The position numbers and the translations under genes are program-made. The notes below the pieces were generated by a model. That model was not told the DNA's origin. It did no database searches and was given only the letters and a program-made list of their open reading frames with translations. From sequence record OQ992561.1: DNA of 64,000 bases. One strand, written 5' to 3'. The stretch's first letter is position 1, and every line of letters begins with the position of its first letter. This document shows, piece after piece, positions 21,235-28,619 of this stretch.

Positions 21235-23268
21235 ATGAATCTTAATCGTTATAAAGCGCGTGATCTTCTAAATCTAAGTTATGATGATTTATGGTCACTC
21301 CCTTCAGAATGGCATCTAATCGAATTTGATGATGGTAAAACGGTTGTGTCAGTTGACCGTATTACCAAATTATCCGTTCTGTGTTGGTATCCTCTTAAAC
21401 ATTATAAAGATTGCCCAATTCCATCTGATCACCATATCGATTTCAATCGCATCTTAACTGATAACCCTAAAGATTATCTAAATGTTGAAGGTGGCCGAGT
21501 AACATCTAAGGCCATGGTTAAGCATTTAAATAAGGCTATTTGGAACATCTATGATTGGTCAGGTGAAACAGTAGATCCTGAAGTACTATCTAAACTGGCT
21601 ATTGAAGGTAAGAACTGGCTGTATAATCAGACCACTGTGAAACTGTCTGAATATCTAGCAACCTTGTCGATGTTTGATATTGCTGAAGTATATAATCATC
21701 CCAAGGTACGTGAGGCTAACCATAATATCGAACCAACTACTTATGGTATCGAAAAAATTAGTTATGGTAAAGTCAAAGAAGTATTTAATGATCCTACCCA
21801 ATTCATTGGTAACAGCATCATTGAAGGTCTTCGTTCTGGTACTCAGAAAACTGAACAGCTTCTACAAGCATTTGCTTGGCGGGGCTTTCCAACTGACATT
21901 AACTCAGATATCTTTAAATATCCGGTAACAACTGGTTATATTGATGGTATTTGGAATCTGTATGAGAATATGATTGAATCTCGTTCAGGTACTAAAGCAC
22001 TACTATATAACAAAGAACTACTGCGAGTAACTGAATACTTTAACCGGAAATCTCAGCTTATTGCACAATATGTCCAAAGGCTACATCCTGGTGATTGTAA
22101 GACCACAATCTTAGCTGAGTATCCTGTAACTAAGTTAACTTTAAAAGCATTCAAAGGAAAATATTATCAAAAAGAAGATGGTAAACTAGACTGGATCCGT
22201 GGAAATGAAACACACCTAATTGGAACTAAACAGAAATTCAGGTCTGTATTTGGATGTAATCATCCAGATAGTCAGGGTATCTGTATGACTTGTTATGGCC
22301 GACTAGGTATCAATATTCCAAAAGGAACTAATATCGGTCAGGTTGCTGCCGTATCGATGGGTGACAAAATTACTTCAGCAGTATTGTCTACTAAACACAC
22401 CGATGCGTCTTCTGCTGTAGAACAATATAAACTTGGCAAAATTGAAAGTAATTATTTAAGAACAGGTGAAATCCCAGAGACACTATATCTAAAGAAAGAA
22501 CTTACTCAGAAGGATTATCGTTTAGTAATCGCACGGTCAGAGGCAGAAAACCTTGCTGACATTTTAATGATTGATGACCTTACTGCATATCCAGCTACTT
22601 CAGCTACTGAACTAACCAGCCTGGCCCTAGTCTATGATGATGAGGTGAATGGTGAATGTGGTGATGTTCTGACTGTGTCGCTGTATAACCGTAGGGCTAG
22701 TCTATCTATTGAAATGCTAAAGCATATTAAGATGGTCCGTTGGGAACTAGATCAGCGAGACAATATCGTCATTAGTCTTCGTGGTTTTGATTTTAACCTA
22801 CCATTCTTAACGCTACCAAATAAGCACGTAAACATGTATGAAGTAATGAAACGATTCCAAAGTTTCTTACATTCCGGTAGTGACTCAGCCGAGGCAGGTA
22901 AACTAAGCACTGAGAAAGTTGGATATACGTCTAAAACGTATCTTAAAAACTACAAGTCACCAATTGAAGCACTACCTGTATTTGCAACAATGGCTAATGA
23001 AAAGATTAGCCTTAATATTTCCCATTGTGAGATCTTGATATACGCTATGATGATCCGTTCAGCTCAATATCGAGACTATCGCTTACCTAAACCCGGTATT
23101 AATGGCCAATTTGAAAAATATAATAGGCTAATGCAATGTCGTAGTTTAGGTGGTGCGATGGCTTTCGAAAAGCAGCATGAGCCACTAAATAACCCAGGCA
23201 GTTTCCTTAACAAGATGAGGAATGACCATCCATATGACTTACTAGTTAAAGGTGGTAAACTGCGATAG
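21235..23268 (+). CDS. Non-virion RNAP beta' C-terminal subunit (gp74)
   Basis: SRSGTKAL bridge helix, Zn site ICMTCYG, trigger loop GQVAAVSMGDKITSAVLSTKH. Confidence 0.9.
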   Translation: MNLNRYKARDLLNLSYDDLWSLPSEWHLIEFDDGKTVVSVDRITKLSVLCWYPLKHYKDCPIPSDHHIDFNRILTDNPKDYLNVEGGRVTSKAMVKHLNKAIWNIYDWSGETVDPEVLSKLAIEGKNWLYNQTTVKLSEYLATLSMFDIAEVYNHPKVREANHNIEPTTYGIEKISYGKVKEVFNDPTQFIGNSIIEGLRSGTQKTEQLLQAFAWRGFPTDINSDIFKYPVTTGYIDGIWNLYENMIESRSGTKALLYNKELLRVTEYFNRKSQLIAQYVQRLHPGDCKTTILAEYPVTKLTLKAFKGKYYQKEDGKLDWIRGNETHLIGTKQKFRSVFGCNHPDSQGICMTCYGRLGINIPKGTNIGQVAAVSMGDKITSAVLSTKHTDASSAVEQYKLGKIESNYLRTGEIPETLYLKKELTQKDYRLVIARSEAENLADILMIDDLTAYPATSATELTSLALVYDDEVNGECGDVLTVSLYNRRASLSIEMLKHIKMVRWELDQRDNIVISLRGFDFNLPFLTLPNKHVNMYEVMKRFQSFLHSGSDSAEAGKLSTEKVGYTSKTYLKNYKSPIEALPVFATMANEKISLNISHCEILIYAMMIRSAQYRDYRLPKPGINGQFEKYNRLMQCRSLGGAMAFEKQHEPLNNPGSFLNKMRNDHPYDLLVKGGKLR

Positions 23269-23326
23269 ACGTGGAGGACGTGAGGTTTGGGGAGCACTGC
23301 TCCCCTTACCGATCGTTGATTTTTTT

Positions 23327-24865
23327 ATGAAACCGATTCTTACAGCAGAACGATACACCCATGGTGTTCGTTTATCCGGTTACGATCGGGAAACATACTT
23401 AAAGATGACTGGATATCTTAATAAACTGGTTTTAAAAGAACCTAAGAAGATACCTGGTCAACGCACCATAATGGAAATAAAGAAAAAATATTATGGTGAA
23501 ACAGAAGATGGTAAATCTGTATTCATCCATCGTGAATGTCTTCAAGAACTTATTAATTATCTAGCCGATAAGAATATACCATCTACTAGAATTGAAATTG
23601 TAGATATTCCTGTACCAACAGCTGTTAAAGTAGACTATACTTTATTTGAACATTATGTTCTAAGGGATTATCAGGAAACCATCCGCGAAGATATTCTAAG
23701 ACCACATTTACATTCAGCACGTGTTGATTTACAGACTGGTAAAGGTAAAACCTTAACTAGTTTAGCTTCAGTTGCAGTAATGAAAGAACGTGGTGTTGTT
23801 ATGATTCCACCTAAATATTTCGGTATTTGGGAGAAAGCATTAAAAGAAACATTTGTTGGTTATGAAGATCAGCTAGGTATAAAATATTTAAAAGTATCTG
23901 GATCTGCTGAGTTACAGAATCTAATTAATCGCGGACTAGAGAATGATTTAGAGGGTGTTGAAATTATTCTCATTAGTTCTACAACATACCGTGCATATAT
24001 CGATACTTTTGAACGATTAGGTGAAAAAATCGATGTAGTTGGATTTAATGTACCACCACCTAGATTCCATGAGGTTATTGGAGCAGGTTGGCAGATCAAT
24101 GATGAGATTCAAGAAGATCCAGGATTAGTATTTCGTACTGATCTATATACCAATGTCAATAAACAAATCTATTTATCAGCTACTCCATACACTGGTAATC
24201 AGTTTGTTACTAAAATGATTGATGTCATGCTACCTGCCACTACAAAGTGTAGGTTACCTGCATATGACTCATACATCAATGTTATTGGCTTGTTATATAG
24301 TGAACCAACTATTAAACCTAAGGACTATTTAACTCCATTTAAAAATACATATAACCATGCTCGTTATGAAACAGTAATGATGAAGAATCCTAGGCGACTA
24401 GACTTCTATTTAAAGATGGTTAAACGTATTGTAGATGGCGTTTATATAAAGGATCGTATTGAAGGTCAGAAATGTTTGCTATTATGCGCGACTGTAAACT
24501 TTATCGATGTACTGACAGCTTATCTTAAGAAACAATATCCAGATCTTCAGATTAATAGACATGTTTCGGGTAGTCCGTATGATAGATTAATGACTAATGA
24601 TATCACTGTATCAACTATTAAATCATCTGGTACTGGTGTTGATATTAGGAATTTAAGGGAAGTTATTCTATTACAAGCAACTGACTCTAAAAAGGACAGC
24701 ATCCAAATTCTTGGACGACTAAGACCATTGAAGAACTGGCCTGATGTAATACCAAGGTTAACATTCATGGTTTGTAATAACATACCTCATCATTGCAGAT
24801 ACGCTAGAAATAAAGAAAATCATTTCATGGGTAAAACTAAAAGTATGCGCATGATGCGTTTATAG
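23327..24865 (+). CDS. SF2 (UvsW/RAD2-like) helicase (gp75)
   Basis: LRDYQ, Walker A QTGKGKT, DEIQ, LSATP, motif VI QILGRLR. Confidence 0.9.
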   Translation: MKPILTAERYTHGVRLSGYDRETYLKMTGYLNKLVLKEPKKIPGQRTIMEIKKKYYGETEDGKSVFIHRECLQELINYLADKNIPSTRIEIVDIPVPTAVKVDYTLFEHYVLRDYQETIREDILRPHLHSARVDLQTGKGKTLTSLASVAVMKERGVVMIPPKYFGIWEKALKETFVGYEDQLGIKYLKVSGSAELQNLINRGLENDLEGVEIILISSTTYRAYIDTFERLGEKIDVVGFNVPPPRFHEVIGAGWQINDEIQEDPGLVFRTDLYTNVNKQIYLSATPYTGNQFVTKMIDVMLPATTKCRLPAYDSYINVIGLLYSEPTIKPKDYLTPFKNTYNHARYETVMMKNPRRLDFYLKMVKRIVDGVYIKDRIEGQKCLLLCATVNFIDVLTAYLKKQYPDLQINRHVSGSPYDRLMTNDITVSTIKSSGTGVDIRNLREVILLQATDSKKDSIQILGRLRPLKNWPDVIPRLTFMVCNNIPHHCRYARNKENHFMGKTKSMRMMRL

Positions 24866-26001: not shown

Positions 26002-26029
26002 GACGACATAAACCCCTCTCCATGTGGAG

Positions 26030-26052
26030 AGGGGCCTGTCTTTATTTTTTTT
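26030..26052. terminator. Bidirectional terminator between convergent genes
   Basis: cccctctcca tg tggagagggg with T-rich tail. Confidence 0.7.
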
Positions 26053-26548
26053 ATTTAGTTAACGGCTTGTTTAATTCATTTAACTGGTTATTGTTATTAA
26101 CAGCTTCATTATGGGTAATATTTCTACATAATTCAATTATGTATTCTACCTCAGAATAAGCTAATTCAAAGAATTCAGTTAATGACATATTAGATAAGCT
26201 ACCTACTTTATACTTGAAGAAATCTCTAGTCAGTCTCCTTCTCAACCCACCTTCGATAAAGTCCTCTTTAGGATTTACCTTATTTAACCACATGGGTCCG
26301 TTTTCTGGTGAACCGATATCGTAATCAAGTAGATATGCTTCTCTTGTTAAACGTGCTGCTGTAGACGGTCTTACTGCCCCTACTGTCGATAATAGTCTAT
26401 CTAAGTGTGTATCATCTTCAGTTAACTTATCATAACCAAAGTTTGGATGTAGGATGTGACCACTATCTTCCTTGAAAGTGGCCTCAAGACGACTATATCT
26501 CAGATCATTAACTACACCATCCGGTTTGACTTCGAGGCCGCCAAAGTA
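26051..26548 (-). CDS. -1 frame extension (165 aa) of the upstream gene, putative gpT-like half of a G/GT tail chaperone
   Basis: Frame is open from the slippery T7 run to TAA 26051, with no ATG/GTG/TTG for 85 codons. The track shows only 26051..26293. Confidence 0.65.
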   Translation of the reverse strand, partial: YFGGLEVKPDGVVNDLRYSRLEATFKEDSGHILHPNFGYDKLTEDDTHLDRLLSTVGAVRPSTAARLTREAYLLDYDIGSPENGPMWLNKVNPKEDFIEGGLRRRLTRDFFKYKVGSLSNMSLTEFFELAYSEVEYIIELCRNITHNEAVNNNNQLNELNKPLTK

Positions 26549-28113
26549 AAAAAAGTTGACAGCATGTCAATAGGGATTAAGTGTGGGAAACGTTCTTTAA
26601 ATTTAGTAGCAGCAGGTGACTCACATACTGGACAATTCCAACTTGTAATTGCAATCATTCCAATTAGTTGTGAATCAATGAAGTTACTCACCGCATTAAT
26701 AAAGCGGTCATTATATTCCGGTGTGGATAGAATATTAGTTAAGAACTTTTCAATAGTTTCACGATTAGTGGTTGCAGTACGAATATTGTCTTCAGAACTT
26801 TCACCATCGTCATCTTCACGTACTTTAATTTCTTTAACAAAATGTGAGAACTGACGGGCAATAGAGATCTTTTGTAAACGTGCAATATACTGAGAACGTT
26901 GCGGACCATCGACTGGTTCATTAAAACTACCTTGAGTCATATCGATAATTGAGTTAATCCAACTATCACCAGACTCTCGGCGATCAGCAATTGTACACAT
27001 CTCAAGAACAACACCAACGTCACCAAACATTTCAGTTACTTGAGTTTCAATACGGAATCCTTCTTTATAAGTCTTAAGATCAGATTCAGTACATGCATTA
27101 AACTTACGTGCAATATATTTCTTTTGTTCTTCTGAGAATGCCAGTAGATCATATTGAACAAGCGTTGACATATTAAGTTTCGCTGTTTCAATATGGTTAC
27201 ATGTATTGGCATCTGCAATGCATGGATAACTATAATTAAATCCATCTGGATACATAGTCGCCGCTAGTGCGTGATGCAAGAACGGCTCATCAGCTACTGA
27301 GATAACATGCTCTAGATCAGTTGGGGTGTTGAACTTATAGTTGGATTGAATAACACATGCAAGTGCTAAACTACTAACCATGTTAAGTAACACAGCTGCC
27401 ATGTTTGAGAACAGCATACCTTTTGATTCAGCGCCTAGCCGGATCTTTAATTGTGCTAGACGTGCTTGTAGGGCAGCTACTTCAGTACCAGTAGGTGCAC
27501 GTAGTTTTACCCAAATACCTGAATGAGGTAGGAAAGTATCATATGGCGTACCGATGTTAGCTTTACGTGTTAGGAAAACTAGAGTTTCATCATCGGTCAT
27601 TTTACGACCATTGGTATTAAATACAGGTCGGCCAGGTCGAATGATCTTTTCACCATAAGGAATTTCACTAGACCATTCAGAACCTTCTCGGGCAGTTGCA
27701 CCGATTGGTGCATCTTCAACAATAGAGTGAGCTAAGCCTTCCAGAATAGCAGCTGTCCACTTTACACCGTCACTAGTGTCATCTACTTTATTATCAGCAA
27801 ATGCTTTAAATAGTTCTTTATTGTGATCCAGGAAATTATAAACAGTCTGGGGATTCTCACGTAGTAAAGTAAGAATGCTAGCACTATCTTTAATAGCCGG
27901 TTCAGAAGCATCCCGGATATTTCCAGTTTTAGCATTACGTGGAATACGTAGTTTAATTTCTTTTTGATCAGGAACGAAAGGTGGAGTTTCCACCTCGTCA
28001 TTATTTTCAATACTAGAGTCAGGATCGTGTTGCGCATTGATCTCATCAATTTGATCTAGTAAATTCTCTTCTGGAGTATCATCGTACTCATTATCGAAGT
28101 CAGCAGTAGCCAT
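26512..28113 (-). CDS. gp77-like protein, putative tail/baseplate-hub assembly chaperone (T4 gp26-like features)
   Basis: 533 aa. WVKLRAPT, YPC...TCNH and terminal CPVC...STFF pattern resembles gp26-type chaperones (recalled, not searched). Confidence 0.55.
   Translation of the reverse strand: MATADFDNEYDDTPEENLLDQIDEINAQHDPDSSIENNDEVETPPFVPDQKEIKLRIPRNAKTGNIRDASEPAIKDSASILTLLRENPQTVYNFLDHNKELFKAFADNKVDDTSDGVKWTAAILEGLAHSIVEDAPIGATAREGSEWSSEIPYGEKIIRPGRPVFNTNGRKMTDDETLVFLTRKANIGTPYDTFLPHSGIWVKLRAPTGTEVAALQARLAQLKIRLGAESKGMLFSNMAAVLLNMVSSLALACVIQSNYKFNTPTDLEHVISVADEPFLHHALAATMYPDGFNYSYPCIADANTCNHIETAKLNMSTLVQYDLLAFSEEQKKYIARKFNACTESDLKTYKEGFRIETQVTEMFGDVGVVLEMCTIADRRESGDSWINSIIDMTQGSFNEPVDGPQRSQYIARLQKISIARQFSHFVKEIKVREDDDGESSEDNIRTATTNRETIEKFLTNILSTPEYNDRFINAVSNFIDSQLIGMIAITSWNCPVCESPAATKFKERFPHLIPIDMLSTFFTLAASKSNRMV
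26548..26554 (-). promoter_or_regulatory. Slippery heptamer T TTT TTT (predicted -1 programmed frameshift)
   Basis: Correct X XXY YYZ phasing at codons 520-522 of ORF 26512..28113. Confidence 0.65.
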
Positions 28114-28124
28114 TTAAAACTCCA

Positions 28125-28619
28125 TTATTGTTGAATTAGTTTTTCGTCCCAACCAGCTTCTCGAAGAGTGCCGATCATCGCTAGGATTACACCATCAATA
28201 CCGCGTTCAATAGCACCTTCAATACCAGTGTATTTAGTAACAAGTTCACTGATGAGTTTTAGTTCATCTTCATTATTTGCTGGACCAGCCTTACCTTGAT
28301 GTTGTGCATATAGGACACTGATAATTTTAGTTAGTCGATTAAGGTCAGCAATAACTGTTTGTAGGTTCTTTTGGAATCCAGTAGGATCAGATAACGTCGG
28401 AATGATTTCATTGATCTTATTGATAACTGGATTAATGAATACTTCAGTTTGTAGAATACGTTTACCTACGGAACCTGCTAGTACATTGACAACATCCCAA
28501 CCATCACGGTTAAGAATATGATCAGCTGCGGCAGCTGATGCTCCAACTGCACGTTCAAATAGACGTAGAGTCTTTTCCTGTTCTTTAGTTAGAGTTGGTT
28601 CTTTAGCTTTATTTGACAT
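28125..28619 (-). CDS. Hypothetical protein (164 aa, helical)
   Basis: ORF with SD ggag. Confidence 0.75.
   Translation of the reverse strand: MSNKAKEPTLTKEQEKTLRLFERAVGASAAAADHILNRDGWDVVNVLAGSVGKRILQTEVFINPVINKINEIIPTLSDPTGFQKNLQTVIADLNRLTKIISVLYAQHQGKAGPANNEDELKLISELVTKYTGIEGAIERGIDGVILAMIGTLREAGWDEKLIQQ

Follow-up and report, generated by a model that had tools for sequence, protein, structure and literature searches.

The Chimalliviridae core gene cg18, examined here in Pseudomonas phage ANB1, is likely to be decoded in two ways: in frame 0, as a protein of 533 residues, and through a programmed -1 slip, probably made by the ribosome, as a protein of about 687 residues. The DNA analyzed (the window) is a stretch of 64,000 nucleotides (nt) of this Phikzvirus and matches record OQ992561.1 at 100% identity with unchanged coordinates. 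We propose that most ribosomes would read frame 0 to its stop, producing a 533-residue protein that ends in a short conserved helix, and that a fraction of them would slip back by one base on a U-rich heptamer of the T_TTT_TTY type (N-Phe-Phe in this gene) and continue for 165 codons in the -1 frame. The long isoform of ~687 residues made in this way would share its first 522 residues with the short one, lose the terminal helix, and gain a flexible linker followed by a helical domain of ~120 residues (PHROG 12109). Both isoforms would probably be needed, in a ratio set by the rate of slippage.

The frame-0 open reading frame (ORF) occupies 26512..28113 on the minus strand (533 codons plus stop), with GGAG 8 nt before its ATG. 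Its product is 99-100% identical to its PHIKZ077 homologs, corresponds to PhiPA3 074, 201phi2-1 gp136 and Goslar gp81, and matches PHROG 4585 with E=7e-196. PhiKZ gp077 is listed as core gene cg18, a hypothetical protein (Table S3, PMC10299810), and the 533-residue protein belongs to it both by its PHROG (4585 / 8054) and by homology to PhiKZ gp077, Goslar gp081 and RAY gp267. Close to the end of the ORF lies a run of seven T, the last six bases of which are two Phe codons in frame 0. A TGA in the -1 frame stands four codons 5' of these Phe codons, and the -1 open stretch therefore begins at 26566; it extends on the minus strand over 26051..26566 (171 codons plus stop, 165 of them after the run) to a TAA at 26051. 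Both frames are open across 26512..26566, the minus-strand overlap that holds the run in phase. The first 85 codons after the run contain no ATG, GTG or TTG, the first start codon being the ATG at 26293, codon 86. The initial annotation, which first called attention to this site, had described the ending of the ORF, the run and its phase, the -1 stop upstream, and the start-less open frame downstream just as we find them, and its sum of 522+165=687 residues for the fused product is correct. The -1 stretch, whose translation matches PHROG 12109, is probably the C-terminal extension of the long isoform. What has been annotated in this place is an 80-codon ORF on the minus strand (26051..26293, PHIKZ076.4 in phiKZ) that begins at the first ATG of the -1 stretch, covers just the 3' half of the conserved sequence, and has no GGAG-type motif upstream of its ATG at 26293.

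The arrangement is conserved at every evolutionary distance that we sampled. The region is 99-99.7% identical to PA7, KTN4, phiKZ and ~45 more phages, and the 121 nt around the run align without any change in length in all 47 Phikzvirus records (30 identical, 16 with one substitution, 1 with two); where the whole 2.9-kb query showed length differences of one or two bases, these fall outside the 121 nt. The -1 stretch of ANB1 departs from that of phiKZ or PA7 at seven sites; six of the changes are synonymous in the -1 frame and fall at third positions, a purifying pattern of substitution. In more distant named phages (PS119XW, PA1C, PhiPA3, Psa21, D6, Phabio, Noxifer, Viktualia and 201phi2-1), tblastn finds the 165-residue stretch at 32-40% identity, mostly from its residue 1 and overlapping the end of the upstream gene; at these loci 8-12 codons separate the end of frame 0 from an in-phase T run of 5-7 bases, and the -1 frame has no stop from before the run as far as the end of the downstream ORF. 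In Goslar, a phage of Escherichia coli with 24.5% identity, the in-phase run has eight T, and the -1 stretch, 173 codons long, contains gp82 and matches the downstream profile with a probability of 98%, the match beginning 35 residues before the annotated ATG. JN03 (SPN3US-like), CR5, Halocynthia phage JM-2012, Vibrio phage Yong MS32, RSL2, RP12 and PCH45 are organized in the same way. The initial annotation had suggested checking whether the run, its phase and the start-less frame recur in the phiKZ, PhiPA3, 201phi2-1 and SPN3US homologs; in phiKZ, PhiPA3, 201phi2-1 and the SPN3US-like JN03 the in-phase T run and the start-less -1 frame do recur, and the length of the run varies.

An alignment of nine upstream proteins recovered 76 loci from IMG/VR, 74 of them analyzable, which after dereplication at 90% identity and the addition of PCH45 gave a family set of 54 lineages falling into 14 clusters at 40% identity. 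All 54 carry an in-phase frame-0 TTT TTY at which a run of 5-9 T ends; 43 have T_TTT_TTY as their heptamer, and the remaining 11 have G or A_TTT_TTY. Frame 0 stops 8-44 codons after the run (median 13), and in every lineage the -1 frame remains free of stops for 147-184 codons (median 162). In 54/54 lineages the -1 frame has no stop between the run and a point beyond the end of frame 0; this holds for the +1 frame, with its median of 9.5 codons, in 22/54, and the pattern exceeds chance. This arrangement persists in lineages with as little as 22-25% protein identity. Pseudomonas phage RVTF4 carries one extra frame break deeper in the downstream part, which may be a sequencing error or real decay; since it keeps both the run and the -1 opening, we rejected it as an exception to the rule.

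Genome annotations have dealt with the conserved stretch in different ways. The ANB1 record places two opposite-strand coding sequences, 26022-26159 (+) and 26214-26324 (+), inside it, and phiKZ, PA7 and Churi have instead a small same-strand ORF that starts at a downstream ATG. The annotated starts of the small ORF vary between phages and include, in 201phi2-1, a TTG that overlaps the upstream stop. The opposite-strand sequences and the small same-strand ORF both look like gene-caller fill-ins for an unrecognized coding stretch, and cg18 appears to be misannotated in every genome inspected, with either an arbitrary start for the small ORF or spurious ORFs on the opposite strand.

Conservation of the run goes beyond what its amino acids require, as is expected of a -1 site. 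The first Phe codon is TTT in 54/54 lineages, though TTC prevails elsewhere in many of the same genes (e.g., 0 TTT versus 14-19 TTC), and the residue before Phe-Phe is of nine kinds with a third base that is T in 43/54, versus 29.5% expected from the same genes; the joint log10 P of -31.6 for the TTT choice and the binomial P of ~4e-14 for the wobble T both assume independent lineages, and kinship makes them overstated. The direction of the result stands with 14 deep clusters. Because TTT is fixed and the preceding wobble T is enriched beyond what the encoded residues account for, codon choice at the T run is, on this comparative evidence, a reflection of selection on the nucleotides themselves.

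Selection seems to act on the products of both frames. In frame 0, Phe-Phe is followed by an invariant Leu and a partly conserved helix, a sign that selection also acts on the short product; AlphaFold models the 533-residue piece (predicted local distance difference test [pLDDT] 78.1, predicted template modeling score 0.80) with a helix at 517-532 as its last element. The same bases read in the -1 frame are poorly conserved, and in the model of the downstream piece the first ~45 residues have a pLDDT of 55-58, ahead of a helical domain with a long helix (131-164) at a pLDDT above 90. Given the conservation of frame 0, the poor conservation of the -1 reading and the low pLDDT there, frame 0 of the overlap probably encodes a conserved helix and frame -1 a linker tolerant of change, both isoforms being maintained by selection.

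As to how the frames would be joined, the run provides the slippery heptamer (or at least Z_ZZN tetramer), in phase with the upstream frame, that marks a -1 ribosomal frameshift site: the motif is T_TTT_TTT in the window, and T_TTY is retained in the 11 lineages in which G or A is the first base of the heptamer. In E. coli, H_HH.U_UU.Y heptamers and the U_UU.C and U_UU.U tetramers are among the motifs most prone to -1 slippage, and the U_UU.U_UU.C heptamer is used by insertion sequence (IS) elements (PMC4066793). Several observations weigh against a programmed ribosomal slip. Phe-Phe is invariant as protein and accounts for part of the run. We did not find a conserved stimulatory RNA structure 3' of the run: the 95 nt taken from the window have a fold no better than that of shuffled sequences (z = -0.13), z falls below -2 in only 7/54 lineages, and RNAalifold gives no consensus structure in two clades. 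Nine IMG/VR sequences (L055, L058, L060, L061, L066, L068, L070, L071 and L080) have a hairpin of 6-11 bp that lies 6-10 nt 3' of the run, with its 3' arm over or beside the frame-0 stop; it is not kept across its clade, and the pair counts lend it no covariation support. The 11 lineages with G or A as the first base and three with only five T would re-pair imperfectly in the P site. Finally, the evidence for the slip is entirely comparative, and slippage by an RNA polymerase would yield an identical protein, indistinguishable by sequence alone. The overlap zone has no Rfam match, and neither a 3' hairpin or pseudoknot nor a 5' Shine-Dalgarno (SD)-like element was identified as a stimulator; such an element is not obligatory for sites of this class.

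The same long isoform could arise if the phage RNA polymerase stuttered on the run and produced transcripts of altered length, a possibility that we consider unlikely. Transcription in these phages is carried out by unusual multisubunit polymerases, the runs often exceed the length required for ribosomal slippage (eight T in 18/54 lineages, nine in 2/54), and no RNA stimulator for a slip by the ribosome was found. It also fits that genes contain fewer runs of seven U than expected, in whichever frame, a deficit that transcriptional slippage may cause (PMC4066793). Against this stands the fact that 16/54 lineages have only 5-6 T, which is short for polymerase slippage. Bacterial polymerases typically slip on about nine T. 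Selection on the protein can explain the extra T's, which often belong to codons for hydrophobic residues. A slip by the ribosome also needs the run to end in phase at its 3' side, and every lineage shows this, a point confounded by the conservation of Phe-Phe. Because of the 16 lineages with short runs, we favor the ribosome as the probable common mechanism of the slip.

It is very unlikely that cg18 is simply two genes, with independent translation of the downstream stretch, either from a non-canonical start codon or through termination-reinitiation close to the frame-0 stop, and the T run present merely to encode Phe-Phe, invariant as that pair is. Some annotations invite this interpretation: 201phi2-1 gp135 is annotated from the TTG that overlaps the gp136 stop, and RP12 ORF254 starts inside the stop codon that ends frame 0 in ORF255, the two having the last base of that codon in common. 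In addition, the -1 reading from the run to the end of frame 0 shows poor conservation, and protein conservation alone cannot fix the N terminus. Two independent genes would leave unexplained, however, the constant -1 relation of the frames in every lineage, the opening from run to stop in 54/54 lineages for -1 versus 22/54 for +1, and the fixed choice of TTT over TTC together with the preceding wobble T. A start common to the family is also wanting. No start codon of the -1 stretch is conserved among the 54 lineages, Goslar and six further named phages; the distance from the run to the first ATG, GTG or TTG ranges from 8 to 151 codons, one lineage lacking a canonical start for 151 of its 154 -1 codons, and an SD-like tetramer precedes the first -1 start in 3/54 lineages versus a background of 11%. 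When the 54 -1 stretches are aligned, 34-42 lineages reach the first conserved block of columns before any codon at which translation could start. The family thus has a long conserved -1 ORF with no initiation signal of its own. The 533- and 165-residue pieces were used as separate queries throughout. With the 165-residue piece as query, HMMER recovered 39 proteins from the full set of 1.84 billion representatives, all of 45-175 residues and with ragged N termini; an in-frame fusion, that is, a long protein with the downstream domain, was found neither among these representatives nor among the homologs of the upstream part, which are 485-633 residues long.

The two-product decoding of cg18 recalls several established recoding systems, above all the G/GT genes of phage lambda (and E/E+E' of P2), in which -1 slippage close to the end of an ORF likewise generates a minor long isoform with an extra domain from a start-less overlapping frame. 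In G/GT, sequence drift has left the arrangement intact, and fusion of the two frames is never seen (PMC5009743); the frames of cg18 are not fused either, and their arrangement is kept despite sequence drift. There are also differences. The cg18 proteins have no sequence or profile relation to G/GT, the 533-residue model has no fold match in the PDB, the heptamer is a T run, and the shared part measures 522 residues versus about 140 in G/GT, cg18 being about four times the size of gpG. Nor does cg18 lie between the tail tube and tape measure genes, and a homolog is detected early in infection. We infer that the resemblance is one of logic and not of ancestry.

These differences bear on the initial annotation, which took the locus for a G/GT-style tail-chaperone fusion: a programmed -1 slip that adds a start-less C-terminal stretch is supported by the comparative evidence, and the chaperone identity is not supported, for want of a family, profile or fold match and in view of the genomic place and size. 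That cg18 encodes a tail or baseplate assembly chaperone pair of the lambda G/GT or T4 gp26/gp51 type is highly improbable, even if the recoding logic is identical, the solved chains of the phiKZ virion do not include the protein, as expected of a chaperone, and some distant homologs are labeled "baseplate protein," "baseplate hub" or "baseplate hub assembly protein" by their depositors with no evidence given. Tail-chaperone proteins are recognized by sequence family and genomic place, and cg18 has neither; its anatomy fits a two-product -1 slip whose long form would share the N-terminal part. The neighbors of cg18 are RNA polymerase, helicase and head genes, its product has 533 residues, the Churi homolog is listed as early-expressed, and the main text of the Goslar virion paper is silent on gp81 and gp82. 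A likeness to T4 gp26, gp51 and gpT, proposed in the initial annotation, was not borne out: we found no named match of this type in Pfam, NCBIfam, PHROGs or PDB sequences, or among PDB folds searched with the 533-residue model, and no demonstrable feature is shared with T4 gp26/gp51, which belong to the baseplate hub and its assembly.

Two further systems offer closer parallels to particular aspects of cg18. In E. coli dnaX, a -1 slip on a homopolymeric heptamer yields two isoforms, tau and gamma, of an essential non-structural protein at a fixed ratio. There the slip truncates the protein, whereas the cg18 slip would extend it, and the dnaX site has an upstream SD-like stimulator and a downstream hairpin, neither of which we found at cg18. 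In the orfA-orfB pairs of the IS3 and IS1 families, a start-less overlapping -1 ORF is expressed as a fusion, and U_UU.U_UU.C is among the heptamers used (PMC4066793); cg18, in contrast, is not a mobile element and has no transposase domains, and the IS3 site has a pseudoknot stimulator.

That the split frame is an artefact, either a homopolymer sequencing error of the kind to which seven-T runs are prone on some platforms or a decayed gene, is refuted by the identical run length in 47 independently sequenced genomes, in which the surrounding 121 nt align without length change, and by the conservation of the arrangement in 54 lineages down to 22-25% protein identity, the purifying pattern of substitution and the lack of transposon insertions in both parts; the initial annotation had raised sequencing error as an alternative, and the constant length in 47/47 Phikzvirus genomes rejects it.

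What the cg18 isoforms do can be approached from genetics and from the sequence itself. In transposon-directed insertion sequencing of phiKZ, PHIKZ077 and PHIKZ076.4 had 0 insertions after trimming (18 and 2 reads untrimmed), versus 1527 reads trimmed and 2146 untrimmed for the neighboring PHIKZ076.2 and 5481 and 6244 for PHIKZ076.3 (PMC12676376); by this assay cg18 is essential in phiKZ. The Churi homolog, gp256, is among the early-expressed proteins in a list derived from proteomics (PMC11849849). Neither piece nor its profile matches a PDB chain, the phiKZ virion entries included; the 201phi2-1 record marks gp138 as detected in virions by mass spectrometry and does not so mark gp135 and gp136. 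A named match in Pfam, NCBIfam or PHROGs was not found for either piece or its relatives, with single proteins or with alignments, and the best PDB fold match of the 533-residue model has E = 2.1. Only 25 positions are conserved at >=90%; among them are cysteines 298, 305, 494 and 497, which are kept in 53/54 lineages and probably form a zinc site assembled from two distant parts of the chain. From these data we infer that the cg18 protein is an essential, non-virion, zinc-binding factor of nucleus-forming jumbo phages whose complexes would need a fixed minor share of subunits with the extra domain. A bolder scheme, to which we give little weight, would have this four-cysteine protein present in two forms at a fixed ratio through slippage by the phage's non-canonical RNA polymerase, with the helical domain tethering the core to a second partner in a family-specific process, e.g., the nucleus-linked or assembly machinery, and with the device as a defining trait of the nucleus-forming jumbo phages.

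The initial annotation knew of no account of this frameshift in phiKZ-like phages, and we likewise found no published description of it in cg18; coverage of the literature was incomplete, so this is absence of evidence only. A 2025 Annual Review article on nucleus-forming phages and the searched part of a 2016 review of recoding do not mention it. Programmed -1 recoding is itself well known; what is notable is its deep conservation in an essential core gene, one of ~70, of much-studied phages, where all annotations inspected have missed it. phiKZ, PhiPA3, 201phi2-1, Goslar, PCH45 and the SPN3US-type phages are models for the phage nucleus, and several are candidates for therapy. If recognized, the long isoform would change the search targets in proteomics, localization studies and structural maps, and would account for both annotated pieces being free of insertions. 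The gene would add a deeply conserved case of -1 recoding to those of tail chaperones, dnaX and IS elements, and a family that keeps its site down to 22-25% identity is a data set for asking what bacterial -1 sites need when no RNA stimulator is obvious. Should the phage polymerase make the slip instead, cg18 would be a case of programmed transcriptional slippage by that class of enzyme.

A G+C-rich, terminator-like hairpin at 26013..26034, which scores on both strands, follows directly upon the stop codon of the -1 stretch, and no terminator-like site is found between the frame-0 stop and the end of that stretch; the hairpin separates the convergent minus-strand operon (the gp78 and gp77 homologs and the -1 stretch) from small genes on the plus strand. 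Immediately upstream of cg18 on the minus strand is the PHIKZ078 homolog (28125..28619, 164 codons; PHROG 14050, function unknown), with GGAG before its ATG. This gene precedes the frameshifted one on the same strand in phiKZ, PS119XW, PhiPA3, 201phi2-1, Goslar and PCH45, and this group of genes may form one functional unit. Farther out, cg18 is flanked by a non-virion RNA polymerase subunit gene, a helicase gene, small ORFs, the gp78 homolog, the gene for the gp79 head protein and virion RNA polymerase genes; in 201phi2-1 the neighbors include gp137-138. ARAGORN detects no tRNA or tmRNA genes in the window (1-64000). The longest ORF of the helicase homolog (phiKZ gp75; 23252-24865, plus strand) begins at the GTG at 23252, and the record starts the gene at 23327; if the GTG were used, the helicase ORF would overlap the end of the RNA polymerase subunit gene (21235-23268).

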